The notes under the pieces were generated by a model. The model was not told where the DNA came from. It was given only the letters and a program-made list of their open reading frames with translations, and ran no database searches. A program made the translations under genes and the position numbers. Positions 47,331 through 51,731 of a stretch of DNA of 64,000 nucleotides are shown in pieces. Where the stretch lies: assembly GCA_964057225.1 (NCBI GenBank), contig CAXKVF010000013.1, forward strand, positions 1 through 64,000, in the 5' to 3' direction. Every line of letters begins with the position of its first letter. Position 1 is the stretch's first letter. This DNA is from Auanema rhodensis. Taxonomy: Eukaryota; Animalia; Nematoda.

Positions 47331-50300
47331 ATGGAAAATTTTGAGAGCAGTTAGTGATTTTTTGCAATTTCAAATTGTGATCTGATTGTTTAAGAACTGA
47401 TTGGTTTTACTAAAGCTGATGTGAAAATTTCATTCTCTGCACAACAAAGCCGTGGAGATGTTTGCCCTATTTGCTGGAAGTTCGATTCTAATATGAGCCG
47501 GCATCTAGTGAGTGATGTGATTTATTGAACTTTTGCAAAGTATTGTTTTAGACAAGACATTTAAAAGAAGAAGACAAGAACGACAAACTTTTAAAAAATA
47601 ACATTATAAAGAAGTTCAATGAGAAATCAAAAGATTTAAGAGATTTATTCTCTGCAAATCGATTTTTCGATAAAAATGAATTTCTTTGTTTAACAACGGG
47701 CATGAGTGAGTTAAACCGAAAAAAGTTAATCTCGAAGTTGGAAAGGTAAACAGTGATTTTTTGAGCAAAAATCCATGGTTTTTGTTCAGTGCTGGTATTA
47801 TGTTCACTCCTTTGGATCAGGAGTGTTCAGGCTTGAACTTGATGCCCAAATGGAATTATGTAGTGGTTCAGGGGGAAATAAGCACACCTAGTTCACTTCA
47901 ATTAGATGAACACAGGGTTGACTTGGAAGAAGAAGGTTCTAACGCTAGTGAATCTAGTGCAAGTACTACTTCTCTTCACTATGAAGAGCACAGCCTGGCA
48001 AGTCTACAAATATATATAAAAAAAAGTGATGCTGTTTTATTTTTAGTACTTCACTGGAAATCGCTTACTGAATGAGCACACAATTGTAACCCAATGTAAA
48101 CTTGGGAGTACTACAAGAAAATGTCAGCAACTGTTGAAAGAGTGTGGAATTGACACGATGCTGGATGTTTCACAACATCGTTTTTTACTGCGTGTCAAAA
48201 GCGCCATAGAAACAACATTCAGTAATAAAACCAGAGAAGAAGTATGTTAATCTTGAATCAGCCTTTTCATTCGTTATATCACTTATAGGTCAAAGGCAGA
48301 TCAAGGCAATCTGTAGCAACAGAGGCAACCAATGCTGCCGCTAGATGGCTGCTTATTAACATGAGATTATCATGTAAAGAAGCAAAACTTTTAAATAGCA
48401 TTGAAGACATAGATCAAAAATACTTATATCAGGCTTTCCAAGCTTATGCCATGAATCATGAAAAGGTAACAGATGAAATACTATTCTTTTAATTCATTTC
48501 AATTAACTTGAGGTTTATCAAAACGGTACTGTTAGGAATTTTATAAGAGGAATTAAAAAATTCTTAGATTTCATTCCTGTGGCATACCCGTAAGCACGCT
48601 ATGCAATTATAAAAATTAAATTTATGTTACAGAGTACAAGGACTAAATAAAGACTGGACAGATGTTTTTAAACGCCTGGGGGAATTACTAAAAACTTTGT
48701 CAAAAGAAGGAAACACGGTAATCATAAAAATTTATTTAGCTATGCTCTAGTTAGTACTAAACTATGCTATACGATAACAACATCAACTCATATATGATAT
48801 TTTAGGTTTCAACTGTATTTAACTCAAGATCTCGGGAAAATCGCGATGTGATGCCATATGGACAAATTGTGAGGTACTCGAAACAATTTATAGAATGGTT
48901 GAAAGTAAAATTATTTGTACCGTAAGAAAAACAAATTGAAACTGTTTTAATCAATTTTGAAAACACAGATTGGATAATTTCAAAAAATCCGAATTTTACC
49001 TTATATCAGCAACTTTGGTATTTGTAATGTGCGTGGAAAACGGTCAGAGACCAGAGGTACGTGAATCATTATTATTAAACAAGTACAATAATGTTTTTCA
49101 AGATTTCATATAAGCTGAGAACATCTGATTTTGAAAAATCTTGTCGATTCCCACATGAAAATAGCGATACATGGGCAACTCCATTTCCGTTAAACAAGGC
49201 TGCAAGATCTAATCAGTTTGTCAGTATCATTCTGAGAATACAATTAAAAAACGTTTTCTAGCTAATGATGTCAGATAATTTATATCAACTGACAAAACAA
49301 TTTTTGGAAATAAAAAAATATTGCTTTTCCCAGGAAAGGGAAATGTATTTAACCAGTATTGGACATTACAAGTTTAAAAAAGTTTTAGACAACGTAAGTC
49401 ACTTAAATATACAAATTGCACACTACATAATATATTAGCTGAGGAAAGTTAATCAGAAAATAGGACCTATTTTACCCGAGGAATGGCAACTACGATCAAT
49501 CAGAAATAGCGCAGCAAACACGTATGCTAAAAAATGGCTAGACATTAAATCAGCTAATTTTGATGAAAATTCATTTCCTGCACAAGGAACAATGGGACAC
49601 AGTCAGGATACACACGTTGAGGTAAAAAAATGTAAAGTACACATGAAAACAACAATTATAGACTTATATTACTGATGGACGATTAATAGCTTATTTTGCT
49701 CACAGCTATCTGAAACTCTTTGAAACATCAGAAAGTGAAGATCAAATCAGAAATCTGTTCTATTCCTCTGTTCAAAACACTTTTGGAACATCAGAACCAA
49801 GCATGATAATGGAACAATTAAATAGAGGTTGGAAAAAAAAATAAAACAAAACAAGTGCAATTTTTATAGAAACAGTAACAATGAATGTTATCCCAGAAGA
49901 ACATATAGAGCAAATGGATACAAACGAAGGTATAACAAGACTACAAATTCAAAAACCTCATACCTGTTTTCAGAAATCGACTATCAGGAAAACACAGCTT
50001 GCAGTTCTAACACGGAAATTGATTTAATACAAAACTCAGGTATACATAACACCGAAACAAAACAAAACACAATACATTTCATTTGTTAGTTGTAGATGAT
50101 GATGTGATGACAAAAGACATTCAAAGCGAGAATAAAGAAATAAGAGAACCACGCGCTTGTAATATACAACTGGATGATTCAAGTATGAAAAGCAATGAGA
50201 AGGTATATTAAAATAACAAAACACATATGTATAATAAATCAAATTAAGAAACTGAATTTCATGCGTGAGCCTGGAAACATAGTATTGGGCAACCCTTGTC

Positions 50301-51731
50301 AAAAAGTATTATCTTTAATAGAATCATCAGACTATAAAGATTCTAAACTCTGGATCTGGCAATACTTCTTAAACTATTGGCCTTTAATAGAAGTGAAAAC
50401 GTCGGAATATAGACATATTATAAATAGAGGTCAAGGTGCAGGTAAACAAGAAAAAAACATAACTGAAAATTAAATTATTGTTTTTAAGGAGTTTTTGCCA
50501 AAACATCTTTGAAACAGGGACAAGGAATAACAGGATATTATGGAAAATGGATTGATGAAAAAACATGGGAAAGGTTAGATATAGTTCTCAAAATTAACTA
50601 AATTGAAATTTTTTAGTTTTGATAAGAACGGTATACATGACCCAAATGGAATAGCAGATTACTACAAAGTATGCGTTAAAGGAGGAAAAACGTTATTCGG
50701 ACATGTCTCTTTGAAGTTCACCTCCTCAACAGGTTTTCATTTTATGCTTGTATTTAAACATTTCTATTTTTAAGAATCCAATGCTGTGAACAAACATAGG
50801 TTTGGAGGTCCCCTGATAAATCATAGTTACAAACACTATAATGCTACTATGAAATTGATAGAATATAATAAAGGTTTGCAATAACATTACCAAAAGACAA
50901 ACCTTAATATAATTCAGAAAAATATGCTATAATTGTGGCAGACAAGGATATTGAAGAAGGACAGGAAATTTTTTGGAAATATGCAGAGAAAAATGACATG
51001 AAAGACAATAACATGGCATATTTCTATCTATGTCATTGTCAGATTTGCCGAGGTTTGCAACACATAATACATCATTTAACTGTTATTTTACTTATTAGGT
51101 CGTTGTCACTGCCAGGCATGCAAAGGATTGTTATACCACGACATGAGTAAACGAGATACTGCTCATAAATTATCTAATTTCTATAAAATATCGAATTATT
51201 TTAACGGAATAGAAATGGATTGGAAAAGTGTAACACAATACATTTTCGAGAACGAAATAAATTACATCAAAACAGAACTAAAGGTAATCATAAATAATAT
51301 AAAACAACTGATTGAGATATATTTCAGAGTCAGAATGATCTGGTCAACATATTTAACAAATTGAGCACAACTTCAAACTACAAGAAGAAACTCAACAAAA
51401 TTAAAGACCTGATCAATAAGATGAAGAAAAGACTCACACAGGCGAACATAGACGACATAGTTAAAGCACTGACTAGAATAGAAATAACCGTGAACAACAA
51501 GAAGGTAAAATACATTACATCGAATACATTCATGAATCTAATAAATTTCAGCTGATTATGGGAATTTTTGGCAGCATTCTACATTCGTCCATCATTATAT
51601 TCAAGAACCAGGAGGATATCAACTATGCACTAATAGAAACAGGAAAGAACAGAAGCAATCTCACAGCATATTATATAAACTGTGATACAAAAAAAATCAA
51701 ATTACTTAAAGACAATTATTATAATTCGTGA
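47331..51731 (+). CDS. Multidomain protein: C2H2 zinc finger - tyrosine recombinase (integrase) - SET/post-SET domain; ~25 exons, roughly 1,050-1,100 aa
   Basis: Manual splicing gives a continuous frame: CPICWKFDSNMSRHLTRH; GTVRNFIRGIKKFLDF (core-binding-like); ENGQRPEISYKLRTSDF (catalytic R at 49048); LNKAAR; LRSIRNSAANT (49493-49504); MGHSQDTHVETY (H 49598, Y 49665); G.GVFAKTSLKQGQGITGYYG; PLINHS (50819); ADKDIEEGQEIFWKY; CHCQICRGRCHCQAC. One intron (~47998) needs a GC donor; the start codon is inferred. Confidence 0.85.

Follow-up and report, generated by a model that had tools for sequence, protein, structure and literature searches.

The first 64,000 nt of contig CAXKVF010000013.1 of the nematode Auanema rhodensis (assembly GCA_964057225.1), the whole stretch that we analysed and that we call the window, form a eukaryotic ribosomal DNA (rDNA) array on the minus strand with a unit length of 8394 bp (Rfam). 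Alignment of an intact rDNA unit to the window (blastn) showed that the 28S genes are interrupted at two places, and the larger interruption, a 22,558-bp insertion that we take to be a mobile element, carries a spliced gene of 25 exons (Table 1). From its N to its C terminus, the predicted product comprises a zinc finger, a region resembling a core-binding domain, a tyrosine-recombinase catalytic domain, an acidic linker, a SET domain with post-SET cysteines, and a conserved C-terminal domain. Based on motifs and on profile matches below threshold, we think that this domain reading is probably right, and in the literature and databases searched we found no protein that unites a zinc finger, a tyrosine recombinase, and a SET domain. 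The larger result is the element itself, an apparently site-specific, recombinase-bearing insertion in the 28S gene with almost no relatives in public data.

The gene and its sole homologue

The gene model was obtained by dynamic programming over GT/GC..AG introns, carrying one frame across, and was refined by hand at two points: an 88-nt intron (48718-48805) replaced a micro-exon, and for the intron at 47998-48046, whose GCAAGT donor is perfect, GC-AG is the simplest reading. The other 23 of the 24 introns measure 40-50 nt, and GC content is 34.6% in exons versus 24.3% in introns. When introns were restricted to 40-50 nt, the real strand sustained one frame over 2925 nt (48806-51730), whereas shuffled sequences reached 795 +/- 204 nt (maximum 1365, n=100), so that a chance open frame can be rejected. 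Under looser rules (38-60 nt, any GT..AG), random AT-rich DNA was threaded for 1.5-2.7 kb; because chance frames grow this long, traversal alone is weak evidence. Leave-one-out codon usage favours the modelled frame in each exon. Given the 1092-codon model, the shuffle control, and six introns held in common with the homologue described below, the existence of a multi-exon gene with short introns and one open frame, first claimed in a preliminary description of this DNA, is confirmed at the level of sequence. Every recombinase and SET motif quoted in that description recurs in the spliced product (NGQRPE, NKAAR, RSIR, MGHS, THVE/TY, GA/GVFA, NHS, GQEIFWKY, and CHCQICRGRCHCQAC), with THVE/TY interrupted by intron 13 and GA/GVFA by intron 18.

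Exon 13 served as the query for an exhaustive phmmer search through 1.84 billion representative proteins, which returned one relative, P0001 (E 9.6e-4, 56% identity). It is encoded at 588-3819 of a 4053-bp Logan contig, L001 (SRR31479242). The PacBio reads behind this contig were obtained for the scarab beetle Kibakoganea tamdaoensis, and the contig may derive from the beetle or from an associated nematode or mite. Residues 396-586 of the spliced model (exons 10-14) match L001 in a single frame (tblastn E 1e-16), and a gene model derived separately for L001 is collinear with the window protein, starting at the first Met and extending about 30 residues beyond the catalytic Tyr; the two proteins are 28% identical. 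Relative to shuffles, similarity is significant over residues 1-110 (z 6.5), 240-395 (z 8.7), and 396-600 (z 35), and introns coincide in position and phase at six sites. At THVE/TY and at the preceding exon junction, L001 is uninterrupted where the window gene has an intron, and its continuity through both confirms these two splices. Word-indexed searches with exon 13, with P0001, and with an HExxH open reading frame (ORF) of the same element found nothing besides P0001, and back-translated pattern scans of JGI metagenomes and IMG/VR, built on the recombinase alignment, found no relatives.

Table 1. Features of the window and their positions
Feature	Position	Strand	Description
25-exon gene	47331..51731	+	1092 codons; ATG 47331-47333, stop 51729-51731
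Exons 1-9		+	47331-47349, 47395-47507, 47552-47745, 47790-47997, 48047-48241, 48289-48465, 48513-48589, 48633-48717, 48806-48921
Exons 10-17		+	48969-49056, 49103-49219, 49262-49393, 49439-49621, 49662-49827, 49870-49929, 49974-50039, 50090-50202
Exons 18-25		+	50249-50441, 50489-50573, 50617-50732, 50775-50873, 50918-51052, 51099-51283, 51328-51504, 51552-51731
C2H2-like zinc finger	47463..47560	+	Residues 30-47, CxxC-x9-HxxxH, spans intron 2; same motif at same place in L001
Region upstream of catalytic domain	48230..48969	+	Residues 240-395; conserved with L001; no Pfam match
Tyrosine-recombinase catalytic domain (likely)	48970..49757	+	Residues 396-600; similarity to L001
Candidate catalytic residues			R422 (49048-49050), K456 (49196-49198), R526 and R529 (49493-49504), H561 (49598-49600), Y570 (49665-49667)
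Acidic low-complexity linker and pre-SET region	49758..50389	+	Residues 601-750, includes exons 15-17; no similarity to L001
Intron 14	49828..49869	+	42 nt, GTTGGA...TATAG; removal connects recombinase half to SET half
SET domain and post-SET cysteine cluster (likely)	50390..51136	+	RGQGA/GVFA, GYYGKWI, LINHSYKHYN, GQEIFWKY, CHCQICRGRCHCQAC
C-terminal domain	51137..51728	+	Residues 926-1092; 47-50% conserved with downstream paralogue, introns at same positions
5'-truncated paralogue of SET C-terminal half and C-terminal domain	51893..52853	+	Open frame, same introns
Insertion in 28S gene	35159..57716	none	22,558 bp, taken as mobile element that carries recombinase-SET gene; Rfam large-subunit rRNA fragments on both sides
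Left 15-bp direct repeat copy	35144..35158		AAAACTAACCTGTCT; 28S nt 3052-3066, rRNA sense AGACAGGTTAGTTTT
Right 15-bp direct repeat copy	57717..57731		Overlaps motif CCGTCGYGRGAC (57728-57739) by 4 nt
Left-end array of palindrome GTATCCAnnTGGATAC	35164..35465		10 copies, 32-bp period, within 310 nt of left end
Right-end set of palindrome GTATCCAnnTGGATAC	56430..57712		8 copies, within 1.3 kb of right end
Large inverted repeat	42594..47279		Arms 42594-44792 and 47279-45085, 94.7% identical
Membrane glycoprotein-like gene	40552..42594	-	12 exons, divergent from recombinase-SET gene; about 480-508 residues

Probable recombinase and SET halves and the intron between them

The zinc finger reported in the preliminary description is borne out by a C2H2-like motif that is conserved in the sole homologue, and Pfam adds a faint zf-Di19 match (E 0.14). 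By its position, the conserved region that follows would be the core-binding domain of a recombinase. For the catalytic domain, we tabulated the motifs of the window gene and L001 against segments of lambda Int and Escherichia coli XerD. The catalytic R, K, [H/R]xxR, H, and Y occur in order and with canonical spacing in both the window gene and L001. Both have a hydrophobic helix followed by GQR and, nine residues on, by S-D-[FI], which the window gene shows as lambda Int does; the Lys after a beta-strand-like stretch lies in SKTG in L001, as in lambda Int, and in NKAA in the window gene. The [H/R]xxR motif is followed by N-S-A-A, and A-Q-x-x-M-[GN]-H-S precedes the Tyr, which comes eight residues later, such that the His-to-Tyr distance is 9 in the window gene, L001, lambda Int, and XerD alike. 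Set against lambda Int and XerD, the motifs read GQR-x9-SD[IF], an SKTG-like Lys, [HR]xxR[NHS]S.A, and AQxx[LM]GH-x8-Y, and neighbouring residues agree as well. Pfam scans covered single exons and the P0001 fragment; for the latter, the top family was PF00589 (Phage_integrase; E 0.023, 14.9 bits, profile positions 71-165 of 172), in the right register.

Several results pull the other way. In the window gene, the first His of HxxR is an Arg (RSIR), whereas L001 has the canonical HEVR. The PF00589 score, obtained on a fragment of the homologue, falls below the curated cut-off of 27.1 bits, and no single exon of the recombinase half matched a recombinase family in Pfam. Searches of PHROGs and NCBIfam found nothing, and neither phmmer nor profiles retrieved a recombinase from among PDB sequences. 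In hhalign, the recombinase pair aligned to 81 XerD relatives with its catalytic motifs in register but with a score of 10.8, below the shuffle mean of 13.2, and an AlphaFold model of P0001 had a predicted local distance difference test (pLDDT) score of 41.7, too low for a fold search. A profile built from 80 XerD relatives scored about 0 bits on the spliced model (hmmsearch). Homology to the Xer family specifically is not supported by hhalign, which did no better than shuffled columns; the lambda Int loci retrieved from IMG/VR were all at least 99% identical, too alike for a profile. Weighing both sides, we regard residues 396-600 as likely, though not proven, to be a tyrosine recombinase: the complete, correctly spaced, and conserved motif set of the preliminary description stands, while the profiles stay below their curated thresholds and the XerD test resembles shuffles.

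The SET half can be read with slightly greater assurance. Four SET motifs (GxG, YxG, NHS, and ExxxxY) appear in canonical order and spacing and are followed by a double CxCxxC cluster: RGQGAGVFA, put together by splicing, at residues 763-771; GYYGKWI at 783-789; LINHSYKHYN at 848-857; GQEIFWKY at 882-889, with Y889 at 50980-50982; and CHCQICRGRCHCQAC at 906-920. Exon 22 matches PF00856 (SET; E 0.019, 15.8 bits, profile positions 85-104 of 105), which, for a single exon, is below the cut-off of 22.4 bits and to that extent tells against the assignment; the other SET exons are too short for profile scoring. When a profile of exon 22 and its paralogue was compared with the PDB, SMYD2 chains accounted for 11/13 matches (E ~0.6), with ExxFxxY and YF[FY]xCxCxxC aligned, whereas a profile of exon 21 matched nothing. 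The likeness to SMYD lies in the C-terminal SET motif and the YF[YF]xCxCxxC post-SET segment, which align with SMYD2 residues 218-263; the match is weak at this E value, and unlike in SMYD proteins, no MYND finger splits the SET domain here. The downstream paralogue is 45-50% identical (tblastn) and retains NHSFKHPNC and ELFWSY, and because of this retention, we consider the SET motifs to be kept under constraint. We therefore rate a SET domain as highly likely; the four motifs and post-SET cluster of the preliminary description hold, with a profile match that remains under the curated threshold. The C-terminal domain has faint Pfam matches only. One of these, in exon 24 (51328-51504), is to the SAM-like N-terminal domain of phage integrases (PF02899, E 0.027), and the best local match of the XerD-family profile, itself non-significant, falls at the same place; the PF02899 match is probably a chance one in a Lys-rich helix.

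Do the two halves belong to one polypeptide? The fusion that the preliminary description had claimed rests on the splicing of intron 14. This intron is ordinary, with leave-one-out scores (donor 6.5, acceptor 5.0) typical of the gene, and the frame is continuous once it is removed. Linker exons 15-17 have a codon-usage log-likelihood of +0.38 per codon, like other exons, and the other two frames are negative. We consider it plausible, and reasonably probable, that the recombinase and the SET domain reside in one protein. The alternative, which we think unlikely, is a pair of genes in which retention of intron 14 ends a zinc-finger recombinase and ATG 49881 opens a SET protein of its own; the pair could be operon-like, or the SET mRNA could be trans-spliced at acceptor 49869. 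Such a pair would make sense of the intron's own sequence, in that retention ends the frame after five codons at a stop (49842-49844) within AATAAA, and the ATG lies 12 nt into exon 15, in frame with it; operons and trans-splicing are common in nematodes. It would also agree with L001, where the finger and the recombinase are present but similarity to the window protein is absent beyond residue 600 and there is no SET part, so that comparison lends the fusion no support. Yet intron 14 is normal in length and splice scores and the frame runs unbroken across it, a stop inside the poly(A) signal would leave no 3' untranslated region, the gap from stop to ATG is only 37 nt, and the L001 protein likewise runs about 300 residues past the catalytic Tyr, in a C-terminal extension that is unrelated to the SET part and has no Pfam match. 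The claim of a fusion thus survives as to intron and frame and is qualified by a homologue without the SET part.

Insertion into the 28S gene and a model for it

The boundaries of the 22,558-bp insertion are sharp. Unit positions 1-432 correspond to 34727-35158 and unit positions 418-6701 to 57717-64000, both at 100% (blastn), with 35158 marking the end of the 28S 3' piece and the remainder of the same 28S gene continuing from 57717. The 15-bp sequence AAAACTAACCTGTCT that is repeated at the two junctions is single-copy in each intact rDNA unit, and its target lies about 70 nt 5' of the sarcin-ricin loop sequence. The neighbouring motif CCGTCGYGRGAC is also present in each intact 28S copy. The element-28S junction had no exact match in metagenomes.

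The two ends of the element are marked by the palindrome GTATCCAnnTGGATAC, which occurs 18 times in the window versus 0.1 expected, always at one of these ends, with the outermost copies 5 nt (left) and 4 nt (right) from the junctions. When the right and left ends are connected through a single core, the reconstructed junction reads GGATACAAGCAAAAC [TAACCT] GTCTTGCTGGTATCC, a 13/15 dyad with 15-6-15 geometry centred in the core. In the core sites of tyrosine recombinases, 6-8 bp lie between two inverted arms of 11-13 bp each (PMC3212892), and the likeness is suggestive; the dyad is partly that of the inverted ends, with only 3-4 bp of symmetry inside the duplicated 15 bp. In 35159-57716, ORF lists and splice-aware scans of both strands, with Pfam on selected pieces, revealed no other recombinase, reverse transcriptase, or DDE-type gene, and the reverse transcriptase found in the window belongs to the separate insertion at 22941-27427. 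A retroelement of the DIRS, Ngaro, or PAT kind was rejected, no gene like a reverse transcriptase having been recognised in the element by these means.

A cut-and-paste transposon, too, would be expected to leave a 15-bp repeat and inverted ends that match imperfectly, and this weighs on the other side. A transposase acting in trans could have moved the insertion, with the recombinase-SET gene as cargo or as a gene captured from the host; imperfect terminal inverted repeats formally fit this reading, as does the 15-bp flanking repeat if taken as a target-site duplication, and the recombinase assignment is sub-threshold. We nonetheless hold this to be very unlikely. We know of no eukaryotic cut-and-paste superfamily with 15-bp duplications. 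The element has no transposase-like gene, the dyad of the joined ends enters the repeated 15 bp and has the 6-8-bp centre of a recombinase core site (PMC3212892), and this 28S helix is also the target of a related class of recombinases (PMC10871703).

An integrase role for the gene becomes much more concrete through its setting, a 22.5-kb element with a site-specific position in the 28S gene. On balance, we lean toward the reading that the gene encodes the integrase of this element, which would be new and Crypton-like or lambda-like. In this model, the element leaves the rDNA as a circle whose junction would carry one copy of the 15-bp core, with inverted 15-bp arms around a 6-8-bp overlap as in the reconstruction above. 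The recombinase would swap strands between the circle site and the matching 28S sequence, so that a core copy ends up on each side; lambda-type integration has this outcome, and the same has been proposed for Cryptons. The zinc finger and/or the palindromic arrays may provide accessory binding sites. More speculatively, the SMYD-like SET domain, on the same polypeptide after removal of intron 14, would methylate a lysine of a histone or partner protein at the element or its target. It might thereby set the chromatin of the interrupted and normally silenced rDNA unit, such that the element's genes are expressed or the broken unit is shut off; this chromatin role, including the countering of silencing proposed in the preliminary description, is conjecture.

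What speaks against this model, beyond the points raised above, is that the gene model is derived from sequence, that one copy of the element was seen, and that the element contains duplicated and truncated gene modules and may be partly decayed. A further reading is a relic, in which the recombinase-like domain is inactive or is a domesticated DNA-binding module, as in the Crypton-derived DUF3504 genes, and the element is immobile. It would suit the Arg in place of the first HxxR His, the internal duplications and truncated paralogues of the element, its single copy, and the near absence of relatives from databases. We give this possibility little credence. Type IB topoisomerases, which are related enzymes, tolerate a basic residue where HxxR has its His. 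None of the 25 exons is interrupted by a stop, and splice signals are kept in 24/24 introns. The catalytic Tyr, both Arg residues, the Lys, and the His at the His/Trp position are retained, whereas domesticated Crypton genes have lost the Tyr and the second Arg (PMC3212892). Moreover, the 28S halves on either side match intact units at 100%.

In eukaryotes, few elements with tyrosine recombinases are known and they are poorly understood, and a 2024 review of transposable elements in rDNA mentions neither tyrosine recombinases nor Cryptons (PMC10946416). The present locus would be a compact and apparently intact example, with defined ends and a 15-bp target in a universally conserved 28S helix. 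Its reconstructable recombination site makes the mechanism directly testable and could yield an integration tool for a safe, multicopy locus. If the SET fusion is true, this would be the first integrase of a mobile element to be found carrying a chromatin writer, offering a handle on how rDNA-dwelling elements cope with the silencing of interrupted units.

The second 28S insertion, at 22941-27427, is 4487 bp long and is flanked by a 17-bp duplication of 28S nt 2377-2393. This site falls between those classically used by R2 and R1 and resembles the nematode R4 site. It holds one ORF of 1289 residues on the rRNA strand, with an RVT_1 domain (E 4e-26), weak Myb-like matches, and a C-terminal Cys/His motif, and its GC content is much higher than that of the 22.5-kb element. 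Because of the RVT_1 domain and the Myb-like matches, this insertion is, by its coding content, an R2/R4-type site-specific non-long-terminal-repeat retrotransposon.

Known systems and the remaining contents of the element

Among described elements, Cryptons share with this one a tyrosine recombinase as the sole movement enzyme, introns in its gene, and no reverse transcriptase; their direct repeats are thought to be the recombination substrate, with a circular intermediate proposed (Goodwin 2003; Kojima and Jurka 2011, PMC3212892). Some carry extra domains or a second protein, e.g., GCR1_C or a C48 peptidase (PMC3212892). Cryptons are, however, a few kilobases long, with 4-6-bp terminal repeats, no inverted ends, and no reported rDNA specificity (PMC3212892), whereas this element spans 22.5 kb and has a 15-bp repeat, inverted ends with palindrome arrays, one 28S site, a SET domain, and a glycoprotein-like gene. 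Its 15-bp repeats and terminal inverted repeats thus depart from the structural definition of a Crypton (4-6-bp direct repeats without terminal inverted repeats). The Pfam scans of exons and P0001 gave no link to DUF3504 or to any other Crypton recombinase, and one survey found no Crypton in nematodes (PMC4157794).

The nearest precedent is provided by the endogenous whispoviruses (Nimaviridae) of crustaceans, in which multi-exon tyrosine recombinases drive insertion into 28S rDNA with duplication of the motif CCGTCGCGRGAC (Kawato et al. 2023, PMC10871703). The nimaviral and decapod family is described as having a C2H2 zinc-binding and a SAM-like N-terminal domain (PMC10871703). Going by this description, the two systems share a multi-exon recombinase, an N-terminal C2H2 finger, insertion into 28S, and a short flanking duplication. 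The motif CCGTCGCGRGAC is present at 57728-57739 and overlaps our 15-bp repeat by 4 nt, and because of this overlap we conclude that both systems target the same 28S helix, which points to a shared hot spot for recombinase-driven insertion. The near-coincident targets suggest a wider, unrecognised family of rDNA-targeting recombinases in invertebrates. The systems differ in that the nimaviral enzymes reside in giant viral genomes, their crossover is offset by about 8 nt, and no SET domain is reported for them; Pfam on selected pieces recognised no nimavirus-like or viral core genes in the 22.5-kb element.

With lambda-type integrases, the gene and its homologue share GQR-x9-SDI, SKTG (in the homologue), and GHxxDT-x4-Y, and the element shares a 15-bp core common to element and target and repeated accessory sites near both ends. 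Unlike these integrases, the gene is eukaryotic, spliced, and far larger, with a zinc finger and a SET domain, and the similarity holds at the motif level only. No excisionase-like partner was identified in the element.

Literature searches found no mobile-element recombinase fused to a SET domain. The closest parallel is SETMAR, a domesticated host gene of anthropoid primates in which SET is fused to a mariner transposase and, to our knowledge, the only SET-transposition enzyme fusion. In both cases, a SET lysine methyltransferase and a DNA recombination enzyme would share one polypeptide, but SET is N-terminal to a DDE transposase in SETMAR and C-terminal to a tyrosine recombinase, within a seemingly intact element, here.

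Two further systems can be compared. Pokey, a piggyBac transposon of Daphnia 28S rDNA, has spacer-derived repeats upstream of its transposase (PMC10946416) and thus resembles this element both in site specificity for 28S and in such arrays upstream of the enzyme gene (here, 63-bp repeats); it differs in its DDE transposase, TTAA target, and 28S site. Starships are large, cargo-carrying fungal elements mobilised by tyrosine recombinases, some of which target 5S rDNA (PMC10104507); they are confined to Pezizomycotina, are far larger, have a different target, and use a captain with DUF3435, which was not detected here.

The 63-bp repeats make up most of the large inverted repeat, whose 2.2-kb arms lie between two divergent genes and end 52 nt upstream of the recombinase-SET ATG. 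They are 75-83% similar to subrepeats of the rDNA intergenic spacer, and the inverted repeat would by its placement be a shared divergent promoter or enhancer. A third array of the 63-bp repeat occurs at the element's left end (35492-35876).

The divergent neighbour encodes a glycoprotein-like product. Its N terminus is signal-like, a hydrophobic segment rich in Gly and Ala comes after the basic stretch KKEKEKRE, and some helical stretches are heptad-like; the protein also has five N-glycosylation sequons, a cluster of Cys residues, and a membrane anchor at its C terminus. It has no Pfam match, and its layout recalls viral class I fusion glycoproteins. We can therefore imagine, as a tentative and rather doubtful extension of the integrase model, an undescribed virus-like eukaryotic element that would combine circular excision, lambda-style integration, an integrase-methyltransferase writing its own site, and a fusion-glycoprotein-like gene for spread from cell to cell or host to host. 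The 5' part of the glycoprotein-like gene has a 90%-identical copy at 54617-55029 (+).

Two paralogous single-exon HExxH ORFs lie at 37346-37861 and 54027-54530 (171 and 167 residues, 47% identical, with an invariant IHELIHVYENIQHPL). They have a faint SprT-like Pfam match (E 0.11), no database homologues, and an AlphaFold pLDDT of 39.3; our guess is a DNA-protein crosslink protease, which would fit beside an enzyme with covalent DNA intermediates. A 73-bp G-rich direct repeat (51817-51888 and 55792-55864, 94.5% identical) surrounds a 3.9-kb module in which four genes of the element recur in diverged or truncated form: the C-terminal part of SET, the HExxH ORF, the 5' part of the glycoprotein-like gene, and a gene for a small basic protein related to 35913-36708. 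The module may therefore be what is left of a related element, nested or in tandem. Tandem repeats occupy 37937-40015 (358 bp x 5.8), 53008-53512 (174 bp x 2.9), and 56961-57341 (196 bp x 1.9) of the element.

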